From contig QPMI01000004.1 of assembly GCA_004431415.1 (NCBI GenBank), positions 83,503 through 147,502 of the forward strand: a stretch of DNA of 64,000 nucleotides. The letters are read 5' to 3'. Source of the stretch: Cyanophora paradoxa CCMP329 (taxonomy: Eukaryota > Plantae > Glaucophyta). This document shows positions 37,681 through 62,100 of this stretch, piece by piece. Below the pieces are notes generated by a model, which worked only from the letters and a program-made list of their open reading frames with translations, was not told where the DNA came from and searched no databases. Every line of letters starts with the position of its first letter. The stretch's first letter is position 1. The position numbers were made by a program, and so were the translations under genes.

Positions 37681-37996
37681 GGGGCAATATATACAGGAGG
37701 GCATCGGATTCAGCTGTGGGCGGGTGGTGTCAGCCGTAGAGGGCGGGAGGCCCGAGTCCAAGCCAGAGGCGCGGACCTGCTCGTGCCAGGATGGCGCTCA
37801 GGACAGCAAACGGCCGGTCGGCACCCAACCGAATAGAGACCGGAATCGGCCCTGCATTAGACGGACGCGAGCTCAGCGTTATCGTCGCCGCGGGGTTACT
37901 AAATTCAAATACTAGAACTCGAGGACGGGCCGACGGAGTCTGGCAACCGCGTGGCCGGCGGGAGGGGCAGCTGGAAATCCGCGCCCCAAGAACCCC

Positions 37997-40900: not shown

Positions 40901-43900
40901 GGCCCCGGAGGGGTACATTGACCTGCACCGAAATATCTTTGAGCGGCGGCGCGCGCGCGCGATTACGGGGCACGGACTCTCTGACGCCTTCGAGCTTGAG
41001 TGCGGCCTCCCGCAGGGCGGCATCGAGTCCCCGCTCCACTGGCTCATCTTCTATGACGCCCTCCTCTGCGCTCAGCAAGAGTTGGACAGAATTGACTGCG
41101 ACCGAGGCGGGGAGGGGGTCGCGTACGTCCTGGGCGACGCGGTCGCGGATGCCGGGCAGCCCCGCGCGCGCGTCACGGGGTGTGCGTACGCGGACGACAC
41201 CCAGTGGTGGAGCGGCACAGCGGCAGGGATTCAGAGACTGGCCGACGTCGCCTCCGAGTTCTTCCGCATGCACGACATCACGGTCAACGCGTCGAAGACT
41301 GAGTTCACGTACAACAACGTCTCACCCGAGCCAGAGGCCCCGCTGCTGGGCCACCCGCGTGTGCCGGTCGGCAAGAAGCTGGCACCGGGCGCGCACTTTA
41401 AGCTACTCGGCGTCTACTTGACCGCGAACCTGTCGTGGACGGAGCAGATTAGACAGATGGAAGCGCAAGCCCGCGAGACCGTCGCAGTCATCGCACGCAA
41501 GCAACTGACCGCGCAAGAGGCCTGCTACATCGTCGAGGCCGTCGTGCAGGCGCGGATCGCGTACGGACTCAAGGTGGTGCCGCTGTCGGAAGCCCAATGC
41601 GACCGGCTGGACGCCATCTGGCTGCGAGTAGTTAAGCACCACGGCGGACTTGCGGCGTCAACGTCGAACTATGCGCTCTGGAGCCACGGCACGTACCGCC
41701 TCCCGCGCATGGCGCACCTGATGGCCAAGAACCAGATCACGGACCTGCTCGCGCGGCTCTGCGGCGAGCCGGACGACTTACTCTCCCAGGTGATGGCCCA
41801 CCGAGTTCGGGCCCTCCAACGAAAGCTAGGCGTGCCGCTGCTGCCGACAGAGTTCCTGAACGCGCACGTAACGCCCCAGCTCGCGAAGGCCAACACGATC
41901 GCCGCGGTGATGCCGCTGCTGCAACGCCGCCAGTACAGGATCCAATCGAACCACGCACGATACGTGAACGCCCCGTACCCCCCCGGGGCCGGTGTACCCT
42001 GGCCGAAGCCGGCAGAGCTCTTGCGCGAGTACGTGCTGGCGACGCACATCCCCAAAGAGATCTTCAGAGATGCGGCCCCTGCCCTATACGCCGCCGGCAT
42101 GTACTGGATGTCCTCTGTTACGGCGCGCGACGGCGAGCGCCTTTGCACTTGGCGGGACTTGCATCTCCGCGCCCCCCGCAACACCCTGTCCTGGGCCGCC
42201 CCTCCCTGGTGGAAACCTCTCGCCGAGGCCCTGACGGTGGACTCCAGCGGCAAGGGGGCCCTTCGGCACCCGATGAGGCAACCCCCCGGTACTCCCCCCT
42301 CGGCCATGGCACAGCTGCCAGGCGGAGCTAAGAAGTACATTCACCGACCCGACGATTTCGTCTGCTACTACGACCTAGCGACCATTCACGACGTCACGAT
42401 ACCGCCTCACGTAGGGCGCCTCCGTACGGCGGAGTCTGAGCCGGGCCGCCTGGTTGCGACGGAATGCCGGCTCGAACACTGGATCCCCGTCCCGGAAGAA
42501 GCAGACCCGACCGCCGACGGCGCCTACTGCCGCTGCGATGGGCACTGTCAGCACGAAATCCGGGAACCGCCCCTCGCGCGGCGCCGCTACAATATCATAC
42601 CCGGGGAGGGCCGGCGGCACTGGCACGACGATCATACCTGCCCGCGGGCCGCCGGCGCGGCCTGCCGCGCGACGAGCACCTGCGACGATGCAGGGGAGCA
42701 CGGGACGTCGGTCGGGGGCTGGGCCGAACATGCCGCCGCGCTGGGAGCCGTACCTGGCGCCGTGGCGACTGCTGCGATCAGCAACGTGCCCGTGGACGAA
42801 TGTGAGGGCCAGGTCACTACCCGCTCCGGCCGCGCCAGCCGCAAAGTCCTGCGCCAAGGCTTACTCGAATATTTTCACCCCGGGCAGACCGCGGCAGCGG
42901 CGATGGACGCGCACCGGTGGCGGATGCTGCTGCAAGCCAGGCAGGAGGGGGACGAGCGCGTTCAATGGCACCTCCTCTCGCCCGAGGACGCCGCCCGCCT
43001 CGCCGAGCTGGAAGCGGACCCGCCGGAACCGCTGCACCTGCCGCAAGACGAGGCGGTCCCGATTACCCCTAGGCAGGCACGGAAATACTACCACGTAATG
43101 AGGGACGAGGACTCCTGGGCGACCTTCCTGCAGGCGTGGGATGGGCTGGAAGCGAACCTCCGCCGCGAGCTGCGGGAAGCTGAAGCCGCCACTGACGGGA
43201 CCTACGAGGCGGCCGCGCCGGCCCAGGCCTGGACGGACGGGAGCCTGCAGGACGGTCAGACGACCCTAGCGCGCGGAGCTTATGCGATCCACTGGCCCGC
43301 GCGTCACCTGCGCACTGGCGCGAGCCTCCACCCGCCGGAAGTCTTTCCCAACTTTCGCGCCCGCCTGAGTGGGACGCAGGAGATCAACAAAGCGGAATTA
43401 CAGGCAGTGCTTACGGCGGACATACTATCCCCGTTCGGAGCCGTCGTCCACATCGACAACCAGAACGCGATCCGCTGGTGTAGGGAATTTGTTCTCGACG
43501 CCGCCCAGCGTAGCCTGCGGGAGTACATCCGGCACGTCTGCTCTGCCGAACTATATGCGTGGCGTAAACTCAGGGCCCAACTAGATTTGAGGGGGCGGCC
43601 GCTCACGCTGGTGAAAGTGAAGGCGCACGCGCAAGGTGAAGCGCGCGACCTGCACAATGACGTCGCCGACGCTCTTGCAAATCGCACAGCAAACGAACAA
43701 CTACCAGCAGAGAGCCTGCACGAGCCTGTCTTCCTGCCGCCGGAGTTTAGCATGCCCGCGGTCCTCACAATCGGCAACGGTGACGGCACCGTGAGGCGGG
43801 TGGAAGGCGACCCGAAAGAGCACATGGACACCTTGCACGAGCACCACACGCACTTCGCCTGGGCGCAGCAACCACTGGCTGGAGCGGTCCTGCGCCGCGG

Positions 43901-45993
43901 CGACGCCGGGGCAGACATCGGCGGACTGTACGCGGAAACGTCTGTAGGTTCCAGGTTCCGCGGCGCGAGCGGGGCTAGCAACGCGCTCTTCAAGTTCAGG
44001 ACCCAACTGCTATGCAGCTCCCTCCCAGCGAACGAAGTCCGGGTACGGGATAGGCCCGACCTTTACGCAGCCTACAACCCGGGCGGCCGCTGCGCGGCTT
44101 GCGCTACGAGGACGCCGTGTGCCCGGCGGAATCAAGCGAACTCGACGGAGGCGAGCGAGCAGCCCGTGCAAGCCGGCCCTAGCCGACAGCGCGCGGCCCC
44201 GACAGCTCTCACCGCGGGCCCAGCAGAGACATACACGCACGTCTTCCTGTGCCCTGGGCCCCATGCAGTGGCGCACCGCGCGGAGACTGCCCGTGAGCTG
44301 AATCGCTTCCTGCGGCGCGTCCACCGCGAGGCTCACGGCTCCCAGCCCAAAAACGTCGATCCCACGCTGGCGCTCGCTTCCGGTCTTGTGCCCGCCTACC
44401 TGCGCGTAGCCGACGATGATGCCGCAGCGCGCAGACTCGACGACGACCCGACCGTCTTCCCGCGGCTCTGGGTACTCCAGGGCGCCGCTCCTACATCGCT
44501 CGAGAGCGACCTTATCCGTCGGCTCGACCTCGATCCGCGCCGCGCACCCCGCACGGCTAAGCGCGTGCGCCAGATGCTAATAGAACGCGCGCGTCGGCTC
44601 TGGTCCGACCGGTGTGCGATCAACGCCGCATGGGAGAAGGACTGTCGCATCTCCCAGGCCTCCAAACGCCGTCCGCGCCCGCGCCGCACAGGGGCTAGAG
44701 CTAAAGAACGCGCCCGCGGCCCTCGTGCCCCGATAGAGTACTGCCCCGCCTGCGACTGGCCCCTGCACCTCCATAACGAACTCCGTGCAGCCCAGAACGC
44801 TGACTGCCCGCCGGAATACCGAGGATGGAAGGCAGCGCTTCAAGCCCAAGAACTCTACGACAGTACCAAGGTCCGCCCCTGGAGCCTGCCCCCCCCGGAC
44901 GATTAACCTACCCTCGTAGGGGGGGGGGGGGGGGGGAGGGGGGGGCTACAACTGGAGGAGACGCGGAGACACGGAGACTCCATCGCTACGCCCACTGACG
45001 ACCTCACTCTCAACCTATCACCTACGGCCGCTCGCCGGGCCCTCGCGCCCGCCGCCGACCCGCCGTCGCCTGCGCGACCTGCGCCTCCACACCTCCCTCA
45101 CTACCGCCGACACGCTCGCCTCCCGCCGCCACCGCTGCTCTTTCCTCCCCTGCCCTCTCTCGCCCGTTGCCCCAGTCGCCCTCCCCCACGGCCCCATCCC
45201 CCACCCCCTCCGCCCCTTCCGCTCTGCTGATCTCCCGCTACCCCAGGGAGGGGACGGTGGTGCGGGCTGCCAGGTGGAAGGTCGTCGGTCGGCCGCTGAA
45301 CCCACCGGCGCCTGCCCCGGCCACGCGCCAGGCCGGGACGGCCGGACCGCCGCGGAGGGGGCTCGTCATTGCCCGCGGCGGGGGGGAGGCGGTCGGCGGG
45401 CGGCTGGAAGCCCGGCGGAACGCGCCACTGGAGCCTCCCTCCTCCCGACCGCGGCTGCCCGACCCGGTCCTCCCCCGTCCTTTCCCACCGCCCAACGTCG
45501 CTCCATGCCGTGCCCTCCTCCCTGCCCCCGTCCCCCTTTCCCCCGACCAATCTTCCCCGAATGCTCTGAGCCTGGCGGCTCCACCAGGCTTGCTCTCGGA
45601 CGAGCGAGCCCCCGACCCGACCCGCCGTGCCGACGACACGGCGGGCCGTACTCTAGCGTGTACAGAGTGGTTTAGATTATAGTGCGCCGTCTCGGAGGCC
45701 CTAGCTTACTAGGCATAGCGCTAGCTACAGCTGCAGCTCACTTCGCTGCCCACCTCTGATTTCTATTCTCGTCCCTGGGTAGTCACACCCTTTCCCGCGT
45801 AGGATCTTTCCTGTGCTGCAGCTCTAGACTTAGTCCCCGGGGTAGCGTCTCCAGTTATTTCCATATCCGAGCTCCACCCGGTCCGATGTCCGAAAGGCTG
45901 AGTCCCGTAGGTTCATCTCTCGACTTGACACAGATGGACACCTCAGTTATATCTCTAGCCATTTGTCTCGGTGTGTGCGAATTCATTGGTATT
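37997..45993 (+). mobile_element. ~8-kb non-LTR retrotransposon (APE-RT-RNase H type)
   Basis: Bounded by the 14-bp direct repeat gccccaagaacccc (37983-37996, 45994-46007). Contains a 2145-codon ORF, with a poly-G tract just after its stop codon. Confidence 0.85.
38472..44906 (+). CDS. Non-LTR retrotransposon polyprotein: AP-endonuclease, reverse transcriptase, RNase H, C-terminal Zn fingers
   Basis: APE: TFNTRG, LQE, GDWN, RIDAVL, SDHFPV. RT: IPKKG, RPITLQE, YGFR, QDIRRAYDSV, GLPQGGIESP, YADD (41187), KLLGVYL. RNase H: WTDGS, INKAELQAV, HIDNQ, KVKAH, NDVADALA. Also CAAC..ETYTHVFLC and CPAC..H..C. The frame is open from 38250 and the first ATG is at 38472. Confidence 0.95.
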   Translation: MTFNTRGTSAGRLQQAEDFAVKWALDLMALQELSISNAELQAALLTPAAAPGEAPLSSITRGRLIHSIKKSKTKGNGAALWVAAPWARHIARHYRCPGRLAGCEIRLKENRQLFVASVYMPPTESKPEHIADQKALMECLERINADFRSRTNAHLLLLGDWNSVAIPATSRIRQGSFVQSQMPERAWWGTLRSTWGLLDAAEEKGKGTEVTFVARHGPPAETSGAPSADDDEAGDAAAEAPDLVSDDRLLDPAPDDVIISAGRIDAVLHSASLQTSLRAVHALPRAVAMPHPSDHFPVMADYDLKMAELSQPAEDEARPAKPPPLFALHLIDKDKLPAFRKAVEERLQGLETELDKALNGVGGGTDEERRERIGTLYRRATEDVLALAKEHKCLKARGSRPASRRPVAWQLVMDKKVGRLLAGWAAESAGGLPSSRLLTRLEKLEGLVKSLVPGPEPMPRRPVRDPDDAAPFPARYGSWRLYFKLLNNWRNRVRRRHQTETSAERNRQIQEFVTARQARFADPRQLRSYLNSVLERSRGEPIMHVTRLARDGNFYEIYTSPDEVKAVMAEHWKQWCAKRNPQLGGTADLVPDSALDYLPPDFWRAVYRPLVLQAGAADAFAGTMIEPTYEELGAYVRSLTDGAGGPSNCTNAILKMLWNPELPDAMDPEAYPPRGRRLLMAIVCEVLRLRDLPSEMCESNIFGIPKKGVWDGDIEGNLRPITLQEVGLKLATGLLTKRLADAIEKPGVLKGVNYGFRKAKSTDDALHLTVAILEDAKEHHKPIYILLQDIRRAYDSVSWVSMELSLRRIGAPEGYIDLHRNIFERRRARAITGHGLSDAFELECGLPQGGIESPLHWLIFYDALLCAQQELDRIDCDRGGEGVAYVLGDAVADAGQPRARVTGCAYADDTQWWSGTAAGIQRLADVASEFFRMHDITVNASKTEFTYNNVSPEPEAPLLGHPRVPVGKKLAPGAHFKLLGVYLTANLSWTEQIRQMEAQARETVAVIARKQLTAQEACYIVEAVVQARIAYGLKVVPLSEAQCDRLDAIWLRVVKHHGGLAASTSNYALWSHGTYRLPRMAHLMAKNQITDLLARLCGEPDDLLSQVMAHRVRALQRKLGVPLLPTEFLNAHVTPQLAKANTIAAVMPLLQRRQYRIQSNHARYVNAPYPPGAGVPWPKPAELLREYVLATHIPKEIFRDAAPALYAAGMYWMSSVTARDGERLCTWRDLHLRAPRNTLSWAAPPWWKPLAEALTVDSSGKGALRHPMRQPPGTPPSAMAQLPGGAKKYIHRPDDFVCYYDLATIHDVTIPPHVGRLRTAESEPGRLVATECRLEHWIPVPEEADPTADGAYCRCDGHCQHEIREPPLARRRYNIIPGEGRRHWHDDHTCPRAAGAACRATSTCDDAGEHGTSVGGWAEHAAALGAVPGAVATAAISNVPVDECEGQVTTRSGRASRKVLRQGLLEYFHPGQTAAAAMDAHRWRMLLQARQEGDERVQWHLLSPEDAARLAELEADPPEPLHLPQDEAVPITPRQARKYYHVMRDEDSWATFLQAWDGLEANLRRELREAEAATDGTYEAAAPAQAWTDGSLQDGQTTLARGAYAIHWPARHLRTGASLHPPEVFPNFRARLSGTQEINKAELQAVLTADILSPFGAVVHIDNQNAIRWCREFVLDAAQRSLREYIRHVCSAELYAWRKLRAQLDLRGRPLTLVKVKAHAQGEARDLHNDVADALANRTANEQLPAESLHEPVFLPPEFSMPAVLTIGNGDGTVRRVEGDPKEHMDTLHEHHTHFAWAQQPLAGAVLRRGDAGADIGGLYAETSVGSRFRGASGASNALFKFRTQLLCSSLPANEVRVRDRPDLYAAYNPGGRCAACATRTPCARRNQANSTEASEQPVQAGPSRQRAAPTALTAGPAETYTHVFLCPGPHAVAHRAETARELNRFLRRVHREAHGSQPKNVDPTLALASGLVPAYLRVADDDAAARRLDDDPTVFPRLWVLQGAAPTSLESDLIRRLDLDPRRAPRTAKRVRQMLIERARRLWSDRCAINAAWEKDCRISQASKRRPRPRRTGARAKERARGPRAPIEYCPACDWPLHLHNELRAAQNADCPPEYRGWKAALQAQELYDSTKVRPWSLPPPDD

Positions 45994-46617: not shown

Positions 46618-46740
46618 GAGGGCGGGTGGGGTCCTAGCGGATGGCCCACCGTCAGCAGCCTGTGGGGTCCTAGCGGAGGGCGGTGGGGTCCTAGCGGCGG
46701 TGGGGTCCTAGCGGAGGGCGGGTGGGGTCCTAGGGAGGGG
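46618..46740. repeat. G-rich minisatellite (GTGGGGTCCTAGCGG-type units) at the satellite border
   Basis: Five copies of gtggggtcctag. Confidence 0.85.
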
Positions 46741-46917: not shown

Positions 46918-49900
46918 TCTGTGGGCCCTACAGGAATTCAAACAGACCAGGGCTAAGAAGGAGTGAACCCAGGAAACACTCAAGTCCCCAAACACTCGGT
47001 GGGGGTCCCACTTGGAAGGGCAGAGCCTTTTAGAGGGCCTCTGCTGGGCAGGGTGCACCTGCCTAAGGCTAGCGCCTTGTGCATGTTCCCCATGGAAAGT
47101 GTTTGTGTGCACCTGACCTTGCTGTTAAGGGCCCAATGGGAATTCAAACTGACCAGGGCTAAGAGGGAGTGAACCCAGGAAACATGCAAGTCCCCAAACA
47201 ATCGGCGGGGGTCCCACTCGGAACAATGGAACTTCTTAGAGGGCCTCTGGTGGGCAGGGTGCACCTGCCTAAGGCTAGCGCCTTGTGCATGTTCCCCCTG
47301 GAAAGTGTTTGTGTGCACCTGACCTTGCTGTTGTGGGCCCAACGGGAATTCAAACTGACCAGGGCTAAGAGGGAGTGAACCCAGGAAACACTCAAGTCCC
47401 CAAACACTCGGTGGGGGTCCCACTCGGAAGGGCAGAGCCTCTTGGAGGGCCTCTGGTGGGCAGGGTGCACCTGCCTTAGGCTAGCGCCTTGTGCATGTTC
47501 TCCCTGGAAAGTGTTTGTGTGCACCTGACCTTGCTGTTGTGGGCCCGACGGGAATTCAAACTGACCAGGGCTAAGAGGGAGTGAACCCAGGAAACACTCA
47601 AGTCCCCAAACACTCAATGGGGCTCCCACTTGGAAGGGCAGAGCCTCTTAGAGGGCCTCTGCTGGGCAGGGTGCACCTGCCTAAGGCTAGCGCCTTGTGC
47701 ATGTTCCCCCTAAGTGTTTGTGTGCACCTGACCTTGCTGTTGTGGGCCCAACGGGAATTCAAACTGACCAGGGCTAAGAGGGAGTGAACCCAGGAAACAC
47801 TCAAGTCCCCAAACAATCGGTGGGGGTCCCACTCGGAACAATGGAACTTCTTACAGGGCCTCTGCTGGGCAGGGTGCACCTGCCTAAGGCTAGCGCCTTG
47901 TGCATGTTCCCCCTGGAAAGTGTTTGTGTGCACCTGACCTTGCTGTTGTGGGCCCAACAGGAATTCAAACTGACCGGGCCCAACAGGAATTCAAACTGAC
48001 CAGGGCTAAGAAGGAGTGAACCCAGGAAACACTCAAGTCCCCAAACACTAGGTGGGGGTCCCACTTGGAAGGGCACAGCCTCTTAGAGGGCCTCTGCTGG
48101 GCAGGGTGCACCTGCCTAAGGCTAGCGCCTTGTGCATGTTCTCCCTGGAAAGTGTTTGTGTGCACCTGACCTTGCTATTGTGGGCCCAACGGGAATTCAA
48201 ACTGACCAGGGCTAAGAAGGAGTGAACCCAGGAAACATGCAAGTCCCCAAACACTAGGTGGGGGTCCCACTTGGAAGGGCAGAGCCTCTTAAAGGGCCTC
48301 TGCTGGGCAGGGTGCACCTGCCTAAGGCTAGCGCCTTGTGCATGTTCCCCCTGGAAAGTGTTTGTGTGCACCTGACCTTGCTGTTGTGGGCCCAACGGGA
48401 ATTCAAACTGACCAGGGCTAAGAAGGAGTGAACCCAGGAAACACTCAAGTCCCCAAACACTAGGTGGGGGTCCCACTTGGAAGGGCAGAGCCTCTTAGAG
48501 GGCCTCTGCTGGGCAGGGTGCACCTGCCTAAGGCTAGCGCCTTGTGCATGTTCCCCCTGGAAAGTGTTTGTGTGCACCTGACCTGCTGTTGTGGGCCCAA
48601 CGGGAATTCAAACTGACCAGGGCTAAGAGGGAGTGAACCCAGGAAACATGCAAGTCCCCAAACACTCGGCGGGGGTCCCACTCGGAAGGGCAGAGCCTCT
48701 TAGAGGGCCTCTGCAGGGCAGGGTGCACCTGCCTAAGGCTAGCGCCTTGTGCATGTTCCCCCTGGAAAGTGTTTTTGTGCACCTGACCTCCTGTTGTGGA
48801 CCCGACGGGAATTCAAGCTGACCAGGGCTAAGAAGAAGTGAACCCAGGAAACATTCAAGTCCCCAAACACTCGGCGAGGATCCCACTTGGAAGGGCAGAG
48901 CCTCTTAGAGGGCCTCTGCTGGGCAGGGTGCACCTGCCTAAGGCTAGCGCCTTGTGCATGTTCCCCCTGGAAAGTGTTTGTGTGCACCTGACCTTGCTGT
49001 TGTGGGCCCAACGGGAATTCAAACTGACCAGGGCTAAGAGGGAGTGAACCCAGGAAACACTCAAGTCCCCAAACACTCGGTGGGGGTCCCACTCGGAAGG
49101 GCAGAGCCTCTTGGAGGGCCTCTGGTGGGCAGGGTGCACCTGCCTTAGGCTAGCGCCTTGTGCATGTTCTCCCTGGAAAGTGTTTGTGTGCACCTGACTT
49201 ACTGTTGTGGGCCCGACGGGAATTGAAACTGACCAGGGCTAAGAGGGAGTGAACCCAGGAAACATGCAAGTCCCCAAACACTCAATGGGGCTCCCACTTG
49301 GAAGGGCAGAGCCTCTTAGAGGGCCTCTGCTGGGCAGGGTGCACCTGCCTAAGGCTAGCGCCTTGTGCATGTTCCCCCTGGAAAGTGTTTGTGTGCACCT
49401 GACCTTACTGTTGTGGGCCCAACGGGAATTCAAACTGACCAGGGCTAAGAGGGAGTGAACCCAGGAAACACTCAAGTCCCCAAACAATCGGTGGGGGTCC
49501 CACTCGGAACAATGGAACTTCTTACAGGGCCTCTGCTGGGCAGGGTGCACCTGCCTAAGGCTAGCGCCTTGTGCATGTTCCCCCTGGAAAGTGTTTGTGT
49601 GCACCTGACCTTGCTGTTGTGGGCCCAACAGGAATTCAAACTGACCAGGGCTAAGAGGGAGTGAACCCAGGAAACACTCAAGTCCCCAAACAATCGGTGG
49701 GGGTCCCACTCGGAACAATGGAACTTCTTACAGGGCCTCTGCTGGGCAGGGTGCACCTGCCTAAGGCTAGCGCCTTGTGCATGTTCCCCCTGGAAAGTGT
49801 TTGTGTGCACCTGACCTTGCTGTTGTGGGCCCAACAGGAATTCAAACTGACCGGGCCCAACAGGAATTCAAACTGACCAGGGCTAAGAAGGAGTGAACCC

Positions 49901-50724
49901 AGGAAACACTCAAGTCCCCAAACACTAGGTGGGGGTCCCACTTGGAAGGGCAGAGCCTCTTAGAGGGCCTCTGCTGGGCAGGGTGCACCTGCCTAAGGCT
50001 AGCGCCTTGTGCATGTTCCCCCTGGAAAGTGTTTGTGTGCACCTGACCTTGCTGTTGTGGGCCCAACGGGAATTCAAACTGACCAGGGCTAAGAAGGAGT
50101 GAACCCAGGAAACATGCAAGTCCCCAAACACTAGGTGGGGGTCCCACTTGGAAGGGCAGAGCCTCTTAGAGGGCCTCTGCTGGGCAGGGTGCACCTGCCT
50201 AAGGCTAGCGCCTTGTGCATGTTCCCCCTGGAAAGTGTTTGTGTGCACCTGACCTGCTGTTGTGGGCCCGACGGGAATTCAAACTGACCAGGGCTAAGAG
50301 GGAGTGAACCCAGGAAACATGCAAGTCCCCAAACACTCAATGGGGCTCCCACTTGGAAGGGCAGAGCCTCTTAGAGGGCCTCTGCTGGGCAGGGTGCACC
50401 TGCCTAAGGCTAGCGCCTTGTGCATGTTCCCCCTGGAAAGTGTTTGTGTGCACCTGACCTTGCTGTTGTGGGCCCAACGGGAATTCAAACTGACCAGGGC
50501 TAAGAAGGAGTGAACCCAGGAAACACTCAAGTTCCCAAACACTAGGTGGGGGTCCCACTTGGAAGGGCAGAGCCTCTTAGAGGGCCTCTGCTGGGCAGGG
50601 TGCACCTGCCTAAGGCTAGCGCCTTGTGCATGTTCTCCCTGGAAAGTGTTTGTGTGCACCTGACCTCCTGTTGTGGGCCCAACGGGAATTCAAACAGACC
50701 AGGGCTAAGAGGGAGTGAACCCAG
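46918..50724. repeat. ~206-bp tandem satellite, proximal block
   Basis: Unit ...gggcccaacgggaattcaaactgaccagggctaagagggagtgaacccaggaaac...; equivalent positions at 46963, 47169, 47375 and 47581 give a period of 206. Confidence 0.98.
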
Positions 50725-53147
50725 AGAGAGAGAGAGAAATGCAGTAGACACATCCATGCCAGCAAGACTGGGTATGACAAAGCCGCAGAGGCCCCGAATG
50801 GGACGTGCAAGGCCCGTCAGGGACCCACTAGCATGGGGAGTGAGTGGAGCCGCATACAGGACCCTGGGCCACCACCCCCAGGGCGCCAGCAAGGAAATAG
50901 AACACCCTATGTGGACATCCGACGGCGCCACATAGGAAGGGCCTGAATCCCCGTGACGGCCCGCTCCCTGTCAGGCGGCCCGAGGGTATCAGGAGGCCCC
51001 GCAGGGACAAAGAAAAATATAAGGTCAAGTAGTACTCAGGATTACTCATTAAAAGCAGCATCTGCCATACCAACAGAAGAGTTATTAGACTCAGGATCAG
51101 AAAGACGAGTACGCTTGCTAGCAGGAGCATCAGAAGACTGGGCCTGAGCCTGTGCTGCTGCGGACTCACGAGTAATCTGCTGAGCAGTGGCAAAAGCACG
51201 CTGAATGGAATGGAAACGAATGATCTCCTCACGAGTAGTAGAGCTCAAGAAATAGAAAACAGGATCTCGATGAAAGTGGTACAAGACACGCTTATCACCA
51301 GCTGCCCGAAGACTGTAGTAAGGAGTATCAAAGGAGGATTAAGGTCTGTGCATTCCTGGGCAGCCGGAACAGGGCAATCTGCCTCAGAGTGAGCGGAAAA
51401 AGCGGAGAGGCTAGACCATTTCTGAGTAGAAGCCAAAGACATATAATACTGGAGAGCAGAGAATTCCGGTTTGAAGCTATTGAAATGGAAGCGACTGATG
51501 CCACCGGATGTGCCCATAAGACAAGAGAGACTAGCCGAGCAGAAGAGCCATCATCCTTCTTAAGAGGAGAATACTGCTTCATAGCTGCCTTATGAATGGG
51601 ATGAGTAGAAGGGACACGAACAAGAAGACTAAAGCGGCAGCTGAAAGGATGATTCGGGGAGACGGAGTCCCAGGATTCGAAGGTAGGCCGACAAAAGACA
51701 GAAAAACTGCGGCTGTCTGGAGAAGCAGATACAACGTGCTGGAAGGTCTTGATAGGCTGGTGGAACGCTACAAGGCAAACATCAGGGCTGGCTTCGAAGT
51801 CAATGGGAGTATCAGAAAGAGAGATAGTCCGAGTCTTATCGATGTGCCAGCGGGGAGCCGACGCCGCAGAAGTGGACAGGAAGATAGATTCCGGCTCCTG
51901 AAGAGCATGCTGGAAGCTAAGAATTTCAGTGATAAAGTCGTCGCGCGAATATAAGCCGACATGGTTCAAAGAGCTATCTGCCTCAGACATGGCAGAGGTA
52001 GGAGGCTGATAGCCAAATTCATACCAAAAGAAGTGACAAGAACCTTTGGAGGAAGGAGCAAAGGAAGTGGATACAATAGCTGCTGGTAAATTATCAAGTG
52101 CTCGGATAATAGGATCTTTATGGGCTTGTTTGACATTCCGAGAAACTACATGAGTATCAGGGAGAAAACCAAAAAAGGTATTCATGGTGCGACGCTGGGC
52201 CAAAAAGGCATTAATTGCCCCAAGCTGAAGTGCTGGGTGGAGGCGGAAGCGATAAACATCACATTGGCGAGGATTGGTTGGAAAAGCTTCCTGAGTCTTA
52301 GTGTTAATCCAAGATGGCTCAGACTGGGACAGCTGCTGTTCAGCGGTAACAGAAGAGCCCGAAAAGGCAGGAAACTGACAGAGGGCCTCTAGTGAGCCCT
52401 TGCGAGATTTGAAGAAAGTTTCACGATCAAAGGACTTGATACGGCGGACATCAGCAGTCTCGCCCCACACAGGGGTGAAAGAGTACATAAGCTCGATATC
52501 AAGGGCTGCACTGGAGGTAAACTGAGAGAGAGCGGCAACAAGAGCATCACGGCCCAAAGGACAGACTGAAAAAGTGCCATATTTCCGAGGGACAGGGGAA
52601 GTGAGGTAAACTGGCCAGCCGCCAATGACGGGGGCATCAGAGGGAAGCTGAAAGCGAGGAGCAGCAGGACCGCGACGTGGGCCGGAAGCCGATGAGGCAG
52701 AATCTGCAGAGACACCCGCAAACAGGTCCATAACGGAAATACTGGCTGATGGAGCATCCACCCGCGCGTCACGGTGAGAGGCTTGACGAGACATGAGTAG
52801 TGGAGCACAATGCGCACTGCGCAGCAAGCCACTGCACGTATGACAGTCAGCGTCACATCCGATGGCGGGAAGTTCGAATCGGAGAAGTCCGGCGAAGGGC
52901 GAGGCGCATGAAGAAGGTCGCTAGGTGACATGGCACTAGATGACAGAGAGGTAGCCACATCGGGCAAGGGATTGGCACAACGGCCGAGGTAAAAGGCACG
53001 AATGCCGAATTCGGATGCGGCGCATGCGCACGATGGAAGAGGACAGGAGGGAGAGCACCAACCAGTGCGAGGATGCCGCGGCGAGTGGCTAGATGGCCCA
53101 GGAGCAGGCAGGCCCACGCCGGGGGTACAGATCATGTGAAACCTTCC
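50725..53147 (-). mobile_element. 2.4-kb non-autonomous retroposon with a single ORF, inserted in the satellite
   Basis: 15-bp TSD agggagtgaacccag (50710-50724, 53148-53162) derived from the satellite unit. (CT)n 3' tail and 3' stem-loop shared with the copies at 35.9 and 37.6 kb. Confidence 0.9.
51042..52794 (-). CDS. Unknown ~585-aa protein (ORF1-like cargo?), two apparent 1-nt frameshifts
   Basis: ORFs 52827-51328, 51517-51245 and 51284-51042 chain with a consistent T-ending codon bias. The shifts near 51520 and 51330 lie at short T runs. No RT, APE, RLE or CCHC motif was recognised. Confidence 0.65.
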
Positions 53148-56100
53148 AGGGAGTGAACCCAGGAAACATGCAAGTCCCCAAACACTCGGCGGGGGTCCCA
53201 CTTGGAAGGGCAGAGCCTCTTAGAGGGCCTCTGCAGGGCAGGGTGCACCTGCCTAAGGCTAGCACCTCGTGCATGTTCCCCCTGGAAAGTGTTTTTGTGC
53301 ACCTGACCTCCTGTTGTGGACCCGACGGGAATTCAAGCTGACCAGGGCTAAGAAGAAGTGAACCCAGGAAACATTCAAGTCCCCAAACACTCGGCGAGGA
53401 TCCCACTTGGAAGGGCAGAGCCTCTTAGAGGGCCTCTGCTGGGCAGGGTGCACCTGCCTAAGGCTAGCGCCTTGTGCATGTTCCCCCTGGAAAGTGTTTG
53501 TGTGCACCTGACCTTGCTGTTGTGGGCCCAACGGGAATTCAAACTGACCAGGGCTAAGAGGGAGTGAACCCAGGAAACACTCAAGTCCCCAAACACTGGG
53601 CGGGGGTCCCACTCGGAAGGGCAGAGCCTCTTAGAGGGCCTCTGCTGGGCAGGGTGCACCTGCCTAAGGCTAGCGCCTTGTGCATGTTCTCCCTGGAAAG
53701 TGTTTGTGTGCACCTGACTTCCTGTTGTGGGCCCGACGGGAATTCAAACTGACCAGGGCTAAGAGGGAGTGAACCCAGGAAACATTCAAGTCCCCAAACA
53801 CTCAATGGGGCTCCCACTTGGAAGGGCAGAGCCTCTTAGAGGGCCTCTGCTGGGCAGGGTGCACCTGCCTAAGGCTAGCGCCTTGTGCATGTTCCCCCTG
53901 GAAAGTGTTTTGTGCACCTGACTTCCTGTTGTGGGCCCGACGGGAATTCAAACTGACCAGGGCTAAGAGGGAGTGAACCCAGGAAACATGCAAGTCCCCA
54001 AACACTCAATGGGGCTCCCACTTGGAAGGGCAGACCCTCTTAGAGGGCCTCTGCTGGGCAGGGTGCACCTGCCTAAGGCTAGCGCCTTGTGCATGTTCCC
54101 CCTGGAAAGTGTTTTTGTGCACCTGACCTCCTGTTGTGGACCCGACGGGAATTCAAGCTGACCAGGGCTAAGAAGAGTGAACCCAGGAAACATTCAAGTC
54201 CCCAAACACTCGGCGAGGATCCCACTTGGAAGGGCAGAGCCTCTTAGAGGGCCTCTGCTGGGCAGGGTGCACCTGCCTAAGGCTAGCGCCTTGTGCATGT
54301 TCCCCCTGGAAAGTGTTTGTGTGCACCTGACCTTGCTGTTGTGGGCCCAACGGGAATTCAAACTGACCAGGGCTAAGAAGGAGTGAACCCAGGAAACACT
54401 CAAGTCCCCAAACACTCGGTGGGGGTCCCACTTGGAAGGGCAGAGCCTCTTAGAGGGCCTCTGCAGGGCAGGGTGCACCTGCCTAAGGCTAGCGCCTTGT
54501 GCATGTTCCCCCTGGAAAGTGTTTTTGTGCACCTGACCTCCTGTTGTGGCCCGACGGGAATTCAAACTGACCAGGGCTAAGAAGGAGTGAACCCAGGAAA
54601 CATGCAAGTCCCCAAACACTCGGCGAGGATCCCACTTGGAAGGGCAGAGCCTCTTAGAGGGCCTCTGCTGGGCAGGGTGCACCTGCCTAAGGCTAGCGCC
54701 TTGTGCATGTTCCCCTGGAAAGTGTTTGTGTGCACCTGACTTCCTGTTGTGGGCCCGACGGGAATTCAAACTGACCAGGGCTAAGAGGGAGTGAACCCAG
54801 GAAACATGCAAGTCCCCAAACACTAGGGGGGGTCCCACTCGGAAGGGCAGAGCCTCTTAGAGGGCCTCTGCAGGGCAGGGTGCACCTGCCTAAGGCTAGC
54901 GCCTTGTGCATGTTCTCCCTGGAAAGTGTTTGTGTGCACCTGACTTACTGTTGTGGGCCCGACGGGAATTCAAACTGACCAGGGCTAAGAGGGAGTGAAC
55001 CCAGGACACATTCATGTCCCCAAACACTCATGGGGTCCCACTTGGAAGGGCAGAGCCTCTTAGAGGGCCTCTGCTGGGCAGGGTGCACCTGCCTAAGGCT
55101 AGCGCCTTGTGCATGTTCCCCTGAAAGTGTTTGTGTGCACCTGACCTTGCTGTTGTGGGCCCAACGGGAATTCAAACTGACCAGGGCTAAGAGGAGTGAA
55201 CCCAGGAAACATCAAGTCCCAAACACTCGGGGGTCCCACTTGGAAGGGCAGAGCCTCTTAGAGGGCCTCTGCTGGGCAGGGTGCACCTGCCTAAGGCTAG
55301 CGCCTTGTGCATGTTCCCCTGGAAAGTGTTTGTGTTCACCTGACCTTGCTGTTGTGGGCCCAACGGGAATTCAAACTGACCAGGGCTAAGAAGGAGTGAA
55401 CCCAGGAAACATGCAAGTCCCCAAACACTCGGGGGGGTCCCACTCGGAAGGGCAGAGCCTCTTAGAGGGCCTCTGCTGGGCAGGGTGCACCTGCCTAAGG
55501 CTAGCGCCTTGTGCATGTTCCCCTGGAAAGTGTTTGTGTGCACCTGACCTTCTGTTGTGGCCCGACGGGAATTCAAACTGACCAGGGCTAAGAAGGAGTG
55601 AACCCAGGAAACATCAAGTCCCCAAACACTCGTGGGGTCCCACTTGGAAGGGCAGAGCCTCTTAGAGGGCCTCTGCTGGGCAGGGTGCACCTGCCTAAGG
55701 CTAGCGCCTTGTGCATGTTCCCCTGGAAAGTGTTTGTGTGCACCTGACTTGCTGTTGTGGGCCCAACGGGAATTCAAACTGACCAGGGCTAAGAGGAGTG
55801 AACCCAGGAAACATCAAGTCCCCAAACACTCGGGGGGTCCCACTTGGAAGGGCAGAGCCTCTTAGAGGGCCTCTGCTGGGCAGGGTGCACCTGCCTAAGG
55901 CTAGCGCCTTGTGCATGTTCCCCTGGAAAGTGTTTGTGTGCACCTGACCTTCTGTTGTGGGCCCACGGGAATTCAAACTGACCAGGGCTAAGAGGGAGTG
56001 AACCCAGGAAACATCAAGTCCCCAAACACTCGGCGGGGTCCCACTTGGAAGGGCAGAGCCTCTTAGAGGCCTCTGCTGGGCAGGGTGCACCTGCCTAAGG

Positions 56101-59100
56101 CTAGCGCCTTGTGCATGTTCCCCTGGAAAGTGTTTGTGTGCACCTGACTTGCTGTTGTGGGCCCAACGGGAATTCAAACTGACCAGGGCTAAGAGGAGTG
56201 AACCCAGGAAACATGCAAGTCCCCAAACACTCGGCGAGGGTCCCACTCGGAAGGGCAGAGCCTCTTAGAGGGCCTCTGCAGGGCAGGGTGCACCTGCCTA
56301 AGGCTAGCACCTTGTGCATGTTCTCCCTGGAAAGTGTTTGTGTTCACCTGACCTTGCTGTTGTGGGCCCAACGGGAATTCAAACTGACCAGGGCTAAGAG
56401 GGAGTGAACCCAGGAAACATCAAGTCCCCAAACACTCATGGGGTCCCACTTGGAAGGGCAGAGCCTCTTAGAGGCCTCTGCTGGGCAGGGTGCACCTGCC
56501 TAAGGCTAGCGCCTTGTGCATGTTCCCCTGGAAAGTGTTTGTGTGCACCTGACTTGCTGTTGTGGGCCCAACGGGAATTCAAACTGACCAGGGCTAAGAG
56601 GAGTGAACCCAGGAAACATCAAGTCCCCAAACACTCGGGGGTCCCACTTGGAAGGGCAGAGCCTCTTAGAGGGCCTCTGCTGGGCAGGGTGCACCTGCCT
56701 AAGGCTAGCGCCTTGTGCATGTTCTCCCTGGAAAGTGTTTGTGTGCACCTGACTTACTGTTGTGGGCCCAACGGGAATTCAAACTGACCAGGGCTAAGAG
56801 GGAGTGAACCCAGGAAACATGCAAGTCCCCAAACACTCGGCGGGGGTCCCACTCGGAAGGGCAGAGCCTCTTAGAGGGCCTCTGCTGGGCAGGGTGCACC
56901 TGCCTAAGGCTAGCGCCTTGTGCATGTTCCCCCTGGAAAGTGTTTGTGTGCACCTGACTTGCTGTTGTGGGCCCAACGGGAATTCAAACTGACCAGGGCT
57001 AAGAGGGAGTGAACCCAGGAAACATGCAAGTCCCCAAACACTCGGCGGGGTCCCACTCGGAAGGGCAGAGCCTCTTAGAGGGCCTCTGCAGGGCAGGGTG
57101 CACCTGCCTAAGGCTAGCGCCTTGTGCATGTTCCCCCTGGAAAGTGTTTGTGTTCACCTGACCTTGCTGTTGTGGGCCCAACGGGAATTCAAACTGACCA
57201 GGGCTAAGAGGGAGTGAACCCAGGAAACATGCAAGTCCCCAAACACTCGGCGGGGGTCCCACTCGGAAGGGCAGAGCCTCTTAGAGGGCCTCTGCAGGGC
57301 AGGGTGCACCTGCCTAAGGCTAGCGCCTTGTGCATGTTCCCCCTGGAAAGTGTTTGTGTTCACCTGACCTTGCTGTTGTGGGCCCAACGGGAATTCAAAC
57401 TGACCAGGGCTAAGAGGAGTGAACCCAGGAAACATGCAAGTCCCCAAACACTCGGTGGGGTCCCACTTGGAAGGGCAGAGCCTCTTAGAGGCCTCTGCTG
57501 GGCAGGGTGCACCTGCCTAAGGCTAGCGCCTTGTGCATGTTCCCCTGGAAAGTGTTTGTGTGCACCTGACCTTCTGTTGTGGGCCCGACGGGAATTCAAA
57601 CTGACCAGGGCTAAGAGGAGTGAACCCAGGAAACATCAAGTCCCCAAACACTCGGGGGTCCCACTTGGAAGGGCAGAGCCTCTTAGAGGCCTCTGCTGGG
57701 CAGGGTGCACCTGCCTAAGGCTAGCGCCTTGTGCATGTTCCCCTGGAAAGTGTTTGTGTGCACCTGACCTTGCTGTTGTGGGCCCAACGGGAATTCAAAC
57801 TGACCAGGGCTAAGAGGAGTGAACCCAGGAAACATCAAGTCCCCAAACACTCGGGGGTCCCACTTGGAAGGGCAGAGCCTCTTAGAGGGCCTCTGCTGGG
57901 CAGGGTGCACCTGCCTAAGGCTAGCGCCTTGTGCATGTTCCCCTGGAAAGTGTTTGTGTGCACCTGACTTCTGTTGTGGGCCCAACGGGAATTCAAACTG
58001 ACCAGGGCTAAGAGGGAGTGAACCCAGGAAACATCAAGTCCCCAAACACTCGGCGGGTCCCACTTGGAAGGGCAGAGCCTCTTAGAGGGCCTCTGCTGGG
58101 CAGGGTGCACCTGCCTAAGGCTAGCGCCTTGTGCATGTTCCCCTGGAAAGTGTTTGTGTGCACCTGACTTCTGTTGTGGGCCCGACGGGAATTCAAACTG
58201 ACCAGGGCTAAGAGGAGTGAACCCAGGAAACATCAAGTCCCCAAACACTCGGGGGTCCCACTTGGAAGGGCAGAGCCTCTTAGAGGGCCTCTGCTGGGCA
58301 GGGTGCACCTGCCTAAGGCTAGCGCCTTGTGCATGTTCCCCTGGAAAGTGTTTGTGTGCACCTGACCTTGCTGTTGTGGGCCCACGGGAATTCAAACTGA
58401 CCAGGGCTAAGAGGAGTGAACCCAGGAAACATCAAGTCCCCAAACACTCTGGGGTCCCACTTGGAAGGGCAGAGCCTCTTAGAGGCCTCTGCTGGGCAGG
58501 GTGCACCTGCCTAAGGCTAGCGCCTTGTGCATGTTCCCCTGGAAAGTGTTTGTGTGCACCTGACTTGCTGTTGTGGGCCCAACGGGAATTCAAACTGACC
58601 AGGGCTAAGAGGAGTGAACCCAGGAAACATCAAGTCCCCAAACACTCGGGGGTCCCACTTGGAAGGGCAGAGCCTCTTAGAGGCCTCTGCTGGGCAGGGT
58701 GCACCTGCCTAAGGCTAGCGCCTTGTGCATGTTCCCCTGGAAAGTGTTTGTGTGCACCTGACTTCTGTTGTGGGCCCACGGGAATTCAAACTGACCAGGG
58801 CTAAGAGGAGTGAACCCAGGAAACATCAAGTCCCCAAACACTCGGCGGGTCCCACTTGGAAGGGCAGAGCCTCTTAGAGGGCCTCTGCTGGGCAGGGTGC
58901 ACCTGCCTAAGGCTAGCGCCTTGTGCATGTTCCCCTGGAAAGTGTTTGTGTGCACCTGACTTCTGTTGTGGGCCCGACGGGAATTCAAACTGACCAGGGC
59001 TAAGAGGAGTGAACCCAGGAAACATCAAGTCCCCAAACACTCGGGGGTCCCACTTGGAAGGGCAGAGCCTCTTAGAGGCCTCTGCTGGGCAGGGTGCACC

Positions 59101-62100
59101 TGCCTAAGGCTAGCGCCTTGTGCATGTTCCCCTGGAAAGTGTTTGTGTGCACCTGACCTTGCTGTTGTGGGCCCAACGGGAATTCAAACTGACCAGGGCT
59201 AAGAGGAGTGAACCCAGGAAACATCAAGTCCCCAAACACTCGGGGGTCCCACTTGGAAGGGCAGAGCCTCTTAGAGGCCTCTGCTGGGCAGGGTGCACCT
59301 GCCTAAGGCTAGCGCCTTGTGCATGTTCCCCTGGAAAGTTTTGTGTGCACCTGACTTGCTGTTGTGGGCCCAACGGGAATTCAAACTGACCAGGGCTAAG
59401 AGGAGTGAACCCAGGAAACATCAAGTCCCCAAACACTCGGGGGTCCCACTTGGAAGGGCAGAGCCTCTTAGAGGCCTCTGCTGGGCAGGGTGCACCTGCC
59501 TAAGGCTAGCGCCTTGTGCATGTTCCCCTGGAAAGTGTTTGTGTGCACCTGACTTCTGTTGTGGGCCCGACGGGAATTCAAACTGACCAGGGCTAAGAGG
59601 AGTGAACCCAGGAAACATCAAGTCCCCAAACACTCGGGGGTCCCACTTGGAAGGGCAGAGCCTCTTAGAGGCCTCTGCTGGGCAGGGTGCACCTGCCTAA
59701 GGCTAGCGCCTTGTGCATGTTCCCCTGGAAAGTTTTGTGTGCACCTGACTTCTGTTGTGGGCCCGACGGGAATTCAAACTGACCAGGGCTAAGAGGAGTG
59801 AACCCAGGAAACATCAAGTCCCCAAACACTCGGGGGTCCCACTTGGAAGGGCAGAGCCTCTTAGAGGCCTCTGCTGGGCAGGGTGCACCTGCCTAAGGCT
59901 AGCGCCTTGTGCATGTTCCCCTGGAAAGTGTTTGTGTGCACCTGACTTGCTGTTGTGGGCCCACGGGAATTCAAACTGACCAGGGCTAAGAGGAGTGAAC
60001 CCAGGAAACATCAAGTCCCCAAACACTCGGGGGTCCCACTTGGAAGGGCAGAGCCTCTTAGAGGGCCTCTGCTGGGCAGGGTGCACCTGCCTAAGGCTAG
60101 CGCCTTGTGCATGTTCCCCTGGAAAGTGTTTGTGTGCACCTGACTTGCTGTTGTGGGCCCACGGGAATTCAAACTGACCAGGGCTAAGAGGAGTGAACCC
60201 AGGAAACATCAAGTCCCCAAACACTCGGGGGTCCCACTTGGAAGGGCAGAGCCTCTTAGAGGCCTCTGCTGGGCAGGGTGCACCTGCCTAAGGCTAGCGC
60301 CTTGTGCATGTTCCCCTGGAAAGTGTTTGTGTGCACCTGACTTGCTGTTGTGGGCCCACGGGAATTCAAACTGACCAGGGCTAAGAGGAGTGAACCCAGG
60401 AAACATCAAGTCCCCAAACACTCGGGGGTCCCACTTGGAAGGGCAGAGCCTCTTAGAGGCCTCTGCTGGGCAGGGTGCACCTGCCTAAGGCTAGCGCCTT
60501 GTGCATGTTCCCCTGGAAAGTGTTTGTGTGCACCTGACTTGCTGTTGTGGGCCCACGGGAATTCAAACTGACCAGGGCTAAGAGGAGTGAACCCAGGAAA
60601 CATCAAGTCCCCAAACACTCGGCGGGTCCCACTTGGAAGGGCAGAGCCTCTTAAGGGCCTCTGCTGGGCAGGGTGCACCTGCCTAAGGCTAGCGCCTGTG
60701 CATGTTCCCCTGGAAAGTGTTTGTGTGCACCTGACTTCTGTTGTGGGCCCGACGGGAATTCAAACTGACCAGGGCTAAGAGGAGTGAACCCAGGAAACAT
60801 CAAGTCCCCAAACACTCGGCGGGTCCCACTTGGAAGGGCAGAGCCTCTTAGAGGGCCTCTGCTGGGCAGGGTGCACCTGCCTAAGGCTAGCGCCTTGTGC
60901 ATGTTCCCCTGGAAAGTGTTTGTGTGCACCTGACTTCTGTTGTGGGCCCGACGGGAATTCAAACTGACCAGGGCTAAGAGGGAGTGAACCCAGGAAACAC
61001 TCAAGTCCCCAAACACTAGGTGGGGTCCCACTTGGAAGGGCAGAGCCTCTTAGAGGGCCTCTGCTGGGCAGGGTGCACCTGCCTAAGGCTAGCGCCTTGT
61101 GCATGTTCCCCCTGGAAAGTGTTTGTGTGCACCTGACCTTGCTGTTGTGGGCCCGACGGGAATTCAAACTGACCAGGGCTAAGAGGGAGTGAACCCAGGA
61201 AACACTCAAGTCCCCAAACACTCGGCGGGGGTCCCACTTGGAAGGGCAGAGCCTCTTAGAGGCCTCTGCAGGGCAGGGTGCACCTGCCTAAGGCTAGCAC
61301 CTCGTGCATGTTCCCCTGGAAAGTGTTTGTGTGCACCTGACTTCTGTTGTGGGCCCGACGGGAATTCAAACTGACCAGGGCTAAGAGGAGTGAACCCAGG
61401 AAACATCAAGTCCCCAAACACTCGGGGGTCCCACTTGGAAGGGCAGAGCCTCTTAGAGGGCCTCTGCTGGGCAGGGTGCACCTGCCTAAGGCTAGCGCCT
61501 TGTGCATGTTCCCCTGGAAAGTTTTGTGTGCACCTGACTTCTGTTGTGGGCCCGACGGGAATTCAAACTGACCAGGGCTAAGAGGAGTGAACCCAGGAAA
61601 CATCAAGTCCCCAAACACTCGGGGGTCCCACTTGGAAGGGCAGAGCCTCTTAGAGGCCTCTGCTGGGCAGGGTGCACCTGCCTAAGGCTAGCGCCTTGTG
61701 CATGTTCCCCTGGAAAGTTTTGTGTGCACCTGACTTGCTGTTGTGGGCCCGACGGGAATTCAAACTGACCAGGGCTAAGAGGAGTGAACCCAGGAAACAC
61801 TCAAGTCCCCAAACACTCGGGGGTCCCACTTGGAAGGGCAGAGCCTCTTAGAGGCCTCTGCTGGGCTGGGTGCATCTGCCTAAGGCTAGCGCCTTGTGCA
61901 TGTTCTCCCTGGAAAGTGTTTGTGTGCACCTGACTTACTGTTGTGGGCCCGACGGGAATTCAAACTGACCAGGGCTAAGAGGGAGTGAACCCAGGAAACA
62001 TTCAAGTCCCCAAACACTCGGCGAGGATCCCACTTGGAAGGGCAGAGCCTCTTAGAGGCCTCTGCTGGGCAGGGTGCACCTGCCTAAGGCTAGCGCCTTG

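Follow-up and report, generated by a model that had tools for sequence, protein, structure and literature searches.

A probable non-autonomous, protein-coding non-LTR retroposon in satellite DNA of the alga Cyanophora paradoxa

We found a 2423-bp insert in satellite DNA of Cyanophora paradoxa that is best explained, at a probability of roughly 0.7, as a copy, now slightly decayed, from a family of non-LTR retroposons that are non-autonomous yet encode a protein. It lies in a 64-kb stretch of DNA that was analysed as a whole and is termed the window here, to which all positions refer. The element has neither a reverse transcriptase (RT) nor an endonuclease of its own, encodes a single protein (ORF X), ends in a stem-loop followed by a (CT)n microsatellite and was probably mobilised in trans by a LINE whose tail matches its own. 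Its anatomy is as follows:

50725–53147, minus strand: the whole retroposed element (2423 bp; the sense strand is the minus strand)
50710–50724, no strand: target-site duplication (TSD) copy adjoining the 3′ tail of the element, AGGGAGTGAACCCAG, satellite sequence
53148–53162, no strand: TSD copy adjoining the 5′ end of the element, AGGGAGTGAACCCAG, identical to the other copy at 15/15 positions
50725–50736, minus strand: (CT)6 microsatellite tail, the 3′ end of the element
50725–51041, minus strand: 3′ UTR (317 nt), of which only the terminal ~120 nt are well conserved with a sister lineage
50754–50836, minus strand: terminal 3′ stem-loop; judged by folding and sister-tail comparison, the site that the mobilising RT probably recognises
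51042–52794, minus strand: ORF X (~584 codons; ATG at 52794, stop at 51044–51042), an orphan protein written in T-ending codons
52477–52701, minus strand: ORF X residues 32–106, with a GGWPVY motif, the sole stretch with an outside relative
52795–53147, minus strand: 5′ leader (353 nt), A-poor, without signs of coding in the frame of ORF X

The element is flanked by satellite arrays with a period of 206 (18 copies, 46920–50724) and of 197 (54 copies, 53150–64000). When the insert and one TSD copy are removed, an uninterrupted satellite unit is restored, which aligns end to end with a neighbouring unit over 163 nt at 95% identity with one 1-nt gap. Since the flanks rejoin into a seamless unit, the TSD is a true duplication and not a product of satellite periodicity alone. 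Thus, the description in the first-pass annotation of an insert of this length in satellite DNA, bounded by a perfect 15-bp TSD and built of a leader, a single ORF and a 3′ UTR ending in a stem-loop and (CT)n, is borne out in each part. Searches for direct and inverted repeats recovered no LTR and no TIR at the termini, where the TSD is the sole terminal repeat, and Rfam and tRNA scans found no tRNA, 5S or 7SL head in the element. The TSD starts with CT in the sense orientation, giving a 2-nt microhomology at the tail junction, and the same two letters open both clear TSDs of the window, namely that of the 2423-bp element and that of a sister element described below. CT runs accompanied by the tail motif are confined to three insertion sites in the 64 kb, against a chance expectation of 0 to 0.3. 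GC content across the window is 65–84%.

The 2423-bp element is the only full-length copy in the 64-kb window; the other two tail-bearing insertions are 5′-truncated:

37580–37680, minus strand: second family copy, a 101-nt 5′-truncated 3′ end that is 100% identical to the element, including (CT)6
35630–36011, plus strand: element A, a sister lineage (382 bp, 5′-truncated) with a homologous 3′ UTR, the same stem-loop and a (CT)8 tail
35616–35629 and 36012–36025, no strand: TSD of element A, 14 bp, CTGCTCGGCGGTTC

The flanks of the 101-nt copy share no more than 4 nt, which is no clear TSD. The sister tail of element A (35890–36009) is 83% identical to that of the element, while the 3′ UTRs upstream of the terminal hairpin are only about 50% alike. 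The last 126 nt of the 3′ UTR fold at -45.3 kcal/mol (z = -4.1), with 0/200 shuffles as good; the 3′ UTR as a whole is unsupported as a structured RNA (z = -1.25), the significance being confined to the terminal hairpin. All of its pairs (32/32) are kept in the sister tail, through seven one-sided changes and one compensatory change, a comparison of two sequences and hence of modest power. Folding and comparison together support the view that the terminal stem-loop of the family is likely to be under structural constraint. The identical 101-nt copy and the sister element that keeps all 32 pairs point to a family that spreads by target-primed reverse transcription, probably with enzymes supplied in trans. 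The TSD, the simple-repeat tail and the 5′-truncated sibling in the same window likewise agree with the earlier proposal of a unit retroposed by this route. The same proposal had added a possible preference for satellite or centromeric chromatin; the window lends this no support, as there one of the three tail-bearing insertions (1/3) lies inside the satellite and two (2/3) lie outside it.

In the mechanism that we propose, a ~2.4-kb RNA would be transcribed from the element, running from the leader through ORF X and the 3′ UTR to the terminal stem-loop with its (CU)n tail. The RT and endonuclease of a ‘stringent-type’ LINE would recognise the stem-loop and tail and nick the target, whereupon the nicked strand would pair, through the AG at its 3′ end, with the (CU)n tail and the RNA would be copied in place. 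Such copying would yield TSDs of 14–15 bp and frequent 5′ truncation. One intact, algal-type LINE of APE-RT-RNase H organization is present in the window (about 37997–45993), 5 kb from the element. It does not share the element tail, having a different 3′ end and no (CT)n, and the 64-kb window shows no autonomous element that ends in this tail.

ORF X spans three frames: frame 2 to ~51530, frame 1 to ~51340 and frame 0 afterwards. The two changes fit two 1-nt deletions in an ORF of ~584 codons in all, as anticipated by the first-pass annotation, which had repaired two 1-nt shifts to obtain one ORF of ~585 aa. The first 418 codons have T at 44% of third positions, C at 29%, G at 16% and A at 11%, and T rises to 59% in the last 97 codons; the corresponding figure for LINE ORF2 in the same window is 9.7% (GC3 78%), so the T-ending codon usage noted earlier is upheld. 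The sense strand of the element is A-poor (16% A), a composition that favours chance ORFs. However, the two other sense frames contain about 30 and 11 stops over the same stretch, and the strong three-base periodicity (T3 44–59%, A3 6–11%) tracks both frame shifts, from which it follows that ORF X is not an artefact of composition. We conclude that ORF X is a genuine coding sequence, its shifted segments included. An intron in place of the frameshifts was considered and rejected: the 180-nt middle segment is stop-free, its own frame has the third-position bias typical of ORF X, and none of the available GTs looks like a splice donor. With two frameshifts as assembled, the copy studied here probably does not yield a full-length protein.

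The protein was searched as three separate frame pieces and not as one joined, frameshift-repaired query. Pfam gave zero matches at E <= 1 for the three pieces, including the RT, endonuclease, ORF1 and gag families, and HMMER against 1.84 billion representatives gave no RT- or endonuclease-like match. Together with the lack of any other long ORF in the element on either strand, these results corroborate the claim that the element is RT-less. The HMMER search returned two matches in all. One, P0001, is a tandem-repeat protein in which six repeats of one 40-residue match inflate the score, and we rejected it as a relative. The other, P0002, is a 176-aa fragment with 42% identity to ORF X over 76 residues, whose cluster has one member, derived from a 977-bp Logan contig; judged by this alignment, we accept it as a weak but true relative, and the only credible one. 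A PDB sequence match to a TCR (E = 0.12) was dismissed as chance. Word searches with the N-terminal 418 aa and the C-terminal 97 aa gave zero matches, NCBIfam and PHROGs gave nothing credible, and the JGI metagenomes gave nothing for either the 22-nt tail motif or the N-domain alignment. In the ESM Atlas the N-terminal piece had no usable match and the C-terminal piece reached chance-level scores of 0.85. AlphaFold2 returned mean confidences (pLDDT) of 32.7 for the 418-aa piece and 37.6 for the N-terminal domain aligned with P0002, leaving predicted models that are unusable, being too poor for a fold search. Hence, the protein is as unrecognised as first reported: family, structure and profile searches name nothing, and P0002 stands as its sole relative.

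An RNA chaperone or targeting factor had been suggested as its role, which we treat as conjecture and nothing more: with a pI of about 8 the protein is close to neutral, and zinc knuckle, coiled coil and RRM signals are all absent. It shows no tblastn similarity to the gag-like ORF at 36079–37254 or to the LINE in the window. As a conjecture of our own, the protein most likely acts in its own RNP as a substitute for ORF1p/Gag, either binding and protecting the RNA or recruiting the borrowed RT.

Several other origins were weighed against this reading. The 2.4-kb unit might derive from a longer LINE in which ORF X follows the RT gene, and represent only its 3′ part; it would then stand alone because the copy was truncated at its 5′ end or because an internal promoter gave rise to a sub-genomic transcript. 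Truncation at the 5′ end is indeed seen in the family (the 101-nt and 382-bp copies), and a separate partner with the same tail is missing from the window; however, the first 353 nt of the insert are a non-coding leader, after which the ORF begins at an ATG with no RT-like coding upstream, and the LINE of the window has no ORF X. We regard such an origin as unlikely. The first-pass annotation had itself raised the case of a 5′-truncated end of an RT-encoding element, which the leader, the ATG-initiated ORF and the lack of RT-like coding make improbable as far as the window extends. If the insert were a single processed retrocopy, produced by a LINE from the mRNA of a host or endogenous-virus gene and belonging to no transposable family, this would account for the mRNA-like layout of a single ORF with a leader and 3′ UTR; the odd codon usage could then indicate a foreign (e.g., viral) source gene, and the host-like 176-aa P0002 attests to a protein present outside this copy. 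A retrocopy is nonetheless at odds with a tail that is (CT)n behind a conserved hairpin and not poly(A), with the recurrence of that tail on the identical truncated copy and the sister lineage in the same window, and with the IMG/VR viral contigs, in which the ORF X protein finds no relative; we consider it very improbable. An intron-containing parent gene of ORF X is likewise absent from the 64-kb window.

The element could, in another reading, be a non-coding retroposon whose long ORF arises from an A-poor strand with few stops. The low A content of the sense strand, a 270-codon junk ORF that lies over the leader in another frame, and a protein nearly without relatives for which AlphaFold yields no confident fold are all compatible with this, but the stops in the other two sense frames, the periodicity that follows both shifts and the 42%-identical stretch in an independent protein (P0002) leave it scarcely any room. 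A further possibility falls within the main reading: ORF X would be the fast-evolving ORF1 of a partner LINE whose ORF2 was deleted. This is a known route to RT-less coding LINE derivatives, as in HAL1 (PMC5753468); the order of leader, ORF, UTR and tail fits a LINE minus ORF2, and many ORF1 proteins are confined to one lineage and resemble nothing known. ORF X, however, is unlike any ORF1/gag family and unlike the gag-like ORF of the window, and its T-ending codons differ from those of the neighbouring LINE ORF2. We hold this derivation to be possible but doubtful.

The favoured reading, a non-autonomous, protein-coding family, has partial counterparts among known systems. HeT-A of Drosophila is an RT-less non-LTR retroposon that encodes a single Gag-type protein and relies on the RT of another element. 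It resembles the element described here in being RT-less with one encoded protein, but it is telomere-specific and poly(A)-tailed with zinc knuckles in its Gag, whereas the present family is without site specificity in the window and without gag motifs. HAL1, an RT-less, ORF1-only LINE derivative of mammals, has a leader, one ORF, a LINE-type 3′ end and no ORF2, and depends on a LINE to copy it in trans (PMC5753468). Its ORF, however, is recognisably L1 ORF1p, whereas ORF X matches no ORF1/gag family, and its poly(A) tail is subject to relaxed recognition, in contrast to the stem-loop and (CT)n found here, a stringent-type signal. The closing stem-loop and short tandem repeats recall the conserved 3′ ends of the eel UnaL2/UnaSINE1 pair and zebrafish ZfL2: UnaL2 and the zebrafish LINEs are of the stringent type, recognising a 3′ stem-loop with short repeats that their non-autonomous partners also carry, and passengers with the LINE tail are mobilised by the LINE ORF2 protein (PMC1636434, PMC4176376). 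As in such LINE/SINE pairs, it is mainly the last ~115 nt that are conserved; but the known passengers are short SINEs that code for no protein and carry pol III heads, whereas the element here is 2.4 kb long, has no tRNA, 5S or 7SL head and encodes a 584-codon protein. Processed pseudogenes and retrogenes are likewise intronless, single-ORF inserts between TSDs, but the present element lacks poly(A), shares its tail hairpin with other insertions and is multi-copy.

The layout of an RT-less coding retroposon is rare but already known. Such elements are few, HAL1 and HeT-A being those named here, and their proteins are recognisable as LINE ORF1 or Gag. ORF X has kin over one 76-residue stretch only, codons that resemble neither the host's nor those of the neighbouring LINE, and a stringent-type hairpin-plus-microsatellite tail. 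More speculatively, and with low probability, ORF X might belong to a hitherto unseen class of retroelement proteins that has no kinship with ORF1p/Gag and lets an RT-less RNA capture the RT of a LINE; its A-poor, pyrimidine-ending codons might then reflect a foreign (e.g., viral) origin or a selected property of the RNA, and protein-coding hitch-hikers, each with a gene of its own invention, might be a recurrent strategy in a glaucophyte-like genome. Should the family prove active, with selection acting on ORF X, it would offer a simple system for learning what a non-autonomous element gains from a protein of its own; it would also enlarge the sparse catalogue of transposons of this alga by one lineage-specific family.

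The satellite array is split by a 2423-bp block (window 50725-53147) whose plus strand opens with (AG)n, so that its sense strand is the minus strand, at the 3' end of which lies (CT)6. The block, its target-site duplication (TSD) and its single long open reading frame (ORF X) are laid out as follows:

46920-50724: satellite, left array, period about 206
50710-50724 and 53148-53162: TSD AGGGAGTGAACCCAG, 15 nt of satellite sequence, directly repeated without mismatch
53147-52795, minus strand: leader, 353 nt
ATG at 52794, stop at 51044-51042, minus strand: ORF X, about 584 codons
after the ORF X stop, minus strand: 3' UTR, 317 nt
53150-64000: satellite, right array, period 197

Excising the block and one repeat copy in silico yields a 163-nt joined flank that matches a neighbouring satellite stretch end to end, being 95% identical to it apart from one gap of 1 nt; the 15-nt repeat is therefore a genuine TSD and does not stem from the satellite periodicity. 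Neither terminal inverted repeats nor long direct repeats were found in the 2423-bp element, and every particular of its description in the first-pass annotation was borne out. The satellite itself is not the same on both sides: on the left it has a period of about 206, a 411-bp higher-order unit, 90% matches and internal 26-nt duplications at 47950-48015 and 49827-49892, and on the right a period of 197 with 95% matches, where the array reaches the window end. An EcoRI site is present in every satellite unit, and a minisatellite of 17-21-nt units (GGTGGGGTCCTAGCGG...; 46662-46739) lies directly upstream of the array.

The A-poor sense strand of the element (16% A; 12% in both UTRs) makes chance ORFs likely, and a meaningless 270-codon frame spans the leader. 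Against a compositional pseudo-ORF, however, the ORF X frame has no stop over 1.59 kb, compared with about 30 and 11 in the two other sense frames across its span, and its third-position bias (T 44%, C 29%, G 16%, A 11%) shifts along with each frame change, reaching 59% T in the last 97 codons. ORF X is thus a genuine coding sequence, and the pseudo-ORF explanation is poorly supported. The T-ending codon usage pointed out earlier is correct and striking: ORF2 of a neighbouring LINE, 5 kb from the element, has only 9.7% third-position T and a GC3 of 78%, and the Asp codons GAT:GAC stand at 17:7 in ORF X versus 28:97 in the LINE. Over the whole element (50725-53147, minus strand), UTRs and ORF alike, the sense strand has a strong excess of pyrimidines and little A, and the low A content of both UTRs indicates that the bias belongs to the entire RNA, beyond codon choice.

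ORF X runs in frame 2 to about 51530, in frame 1 to about 51340 and in frame 0 thereafter, which amounts to the loss of 1 nt at two points of an intact frame. A retained intron was considered in place of the frameshifts and rejected: the middle 180 nt are stop-free in their own frame with third positions like those of ORF X (T 38%, C 33%, G 17%, A 12%), and are therefore shifted coding sequence. In the assembly as read, this double break reflects either a source copy that was already defective, shifts after insertion, or assembly errors; in the first case, ORF X would be dispensable in cis.

No resemblance to a reverse transcriptase (RT), endonuclease or integrase was detected anywhere in the element, and a tRNA scan and Rfam gave no sign of a pol III head. 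ORF X, searched as three separate pieces and not as a frameshift-repaired joined sequence, had zero Pfam matches at E <= 1, was negative against PDB sequences, NCBIfam and PHROGs, and recovered no RT, endonuclease or integrase when all of 1.84 billion representative proteins were scanned with HMMER. Equally negative were a word search with the N-terminal 418 aa and the C-terminal 97 aa against an index of 5.8 billion proteins and all ORF X searches of the ESM Atlas, IMG/VR and JGI metagenomes. Together with the TSD and (CT)6, this supports the core of the original reading, namely an RT-less, single-ORF retroposon of the target-primed reverse transcription type with an unrecognised protein. Two proteins came out of the exhaustive HMMER search. 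One (P0001) was rejected as a relative, being a tandem-repeat protein whose score counts a single weak 40-residue match six times over. The other (P0002), a 176-residue product of a 977-bp Logan contig, matches residues 32-106 of ORF X with 42% identity (pairwise E = 1e-12), and both display GGWPVY followed by a P-x-P-x-K-[YF]-G-x-F motif; the N-terminal domain of ORF X hence occurs beyond this locus. The AlphaFold2 models were too poor to use, with pLDDT at 32.7 (418-aa piece) and 37.6 (N-domain plus P0002). The protein is rich in Ser, Ala, Pro and Phe, is near neutral (pI about 8.1) and has KRTR in its C-terminal tail; it contains neither a zinc knuckle nor an evident coiled coil, and the earlier suggestion of an RNA chaperone found no support.

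The terminal 126 nt of the element fold into an extended, imperfectly paired hairpin (-45.3 kcal/mol, z = -4.1, 0/200 shuffles as stable), whereas folding of the whole 3' UTR is unexceptional (z = -1.25). A 21-nt core motif of this tail and CT runs occur at exactly three sites in the 64-kb window, against chance expectations of 0 and 0.3:

50725-53147, minus strand: the ORF X element, tail motif and CT run
37580-37680, minus strand: 101-nt fragment
35890-36011, plus strand: end of element A, a 5'-truncated insertion of a sister lineage

The fragment matches the 3' end of the ORF X element at 100% identity, (CT)6 included, and breaks off abruptly within the hairpin region, and is therefore a severely 5'-truncated copy; no convincing TSD was found around it. 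Element A (382 bp, 35630-36011) has a (CT)8 tail and is flanked by a 14-bp TSD of its own (CTGCTCGGCGGTTC). Over its terminal 121 nt it is 83% identical to the ORF X element, over the remaining 3' UTR only about half identical, and its hairpin is likewise stable (-49.6 kcal/mol, z = -4.9). All 32 consensus hairpin pairs are kept in both elements, seven with one-sided changes and one changed on both sides, a small test on two sequences. Conservation focused on the terminal ~115 nt with intact pairing is what a functional recognition element would predict. Both clear TSDs start with CT in the sense orientation, so that the (CU)n tail can base-pair with the target strand at the 3' end left by the nick. 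At least two lineages have the constrained tail in common, and the perfect TSD and identical truncated sibling mark very recent activity. With one of the three tail-bearing insertions in the window sitting in satellite, the proposed satellite or centromere preference is not supported.

The neighbouring LINE has a 2145-codon ORF (38469-44906) with APE, RT and RNase H and is apparently intact; two 14-nt copies of GCCCCAAGAACCCC in direct orientation, at 37983 and 45994, are probably its TSD, giving a span of about 37997-45993 (plus strand). A long run of G comes right after the stop (about 44918-44945) in its 3' region of ~1.1 kb, which lacks an A-rich or microsatellite tail, and both the hairpin motif of the ORF X element and (CT)n are missing from its 3' end; under stringent 3'-end recognition, therefore, this LINE is not the mobiliser of ORF X units. 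A 13-nt direct repeat (GCGGACCTGCTCG; 35610-35622 / 37771-37783) encloses a ~2.15-kb block (35610-37783) with a degenerate gag-like ORF (36079-37254) that displays a C-x2-C-x4-H-x4-C knuckle and two in-frame stops. Element A is inserted at the exact 5' junction of this block, which also contains the 101-nt tail fragment in reverse, and which could represent another, gag-only type of RT-less retroposon. ORF X shows no similarity to the gag-like ORF or to the LINE. Elsewhere, window 8001-12000 has a GC content of 84% and contains long ORFs that overlap one another in several frames of either strand; it may represent coding sequence rich in GC, or else DNA of low complexity.

The ORF X element bears the hallmarks of retroposition and is devoid of an RT, from which we infer mobilisation in trans: an RNA of ~2.4 kb would be copied by target-primed reverse transcription, the copying being done by a LINE enzyme that recognises the terminal stem-loop and short repeats. 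Such recognition is experimentally established for UnaL2 and zebrafish LINEs with their tail-sharing passengers (PMC1636434, PMC4176376), and HAL1 is a precedent for a protein-coding unit devoid of an RT (PMC5753468). As a guess, the putative role of ORF X would be in RNP formation or RT recruitment, in place of ORF1p. HeT-A is a further precedent for an RT-less, protein-encoding unit. The main rival holds that ORF X normally lies downstream of the RT in a longer LINE, such units being truncations or sub-genomic transcripts; against this, the leader is non-coding and ORF X is initiated by an ATG. A one-off retrogene is poorly supported. The significance of the element rests mainly on its orphan protein and the odd codon usage thereof.
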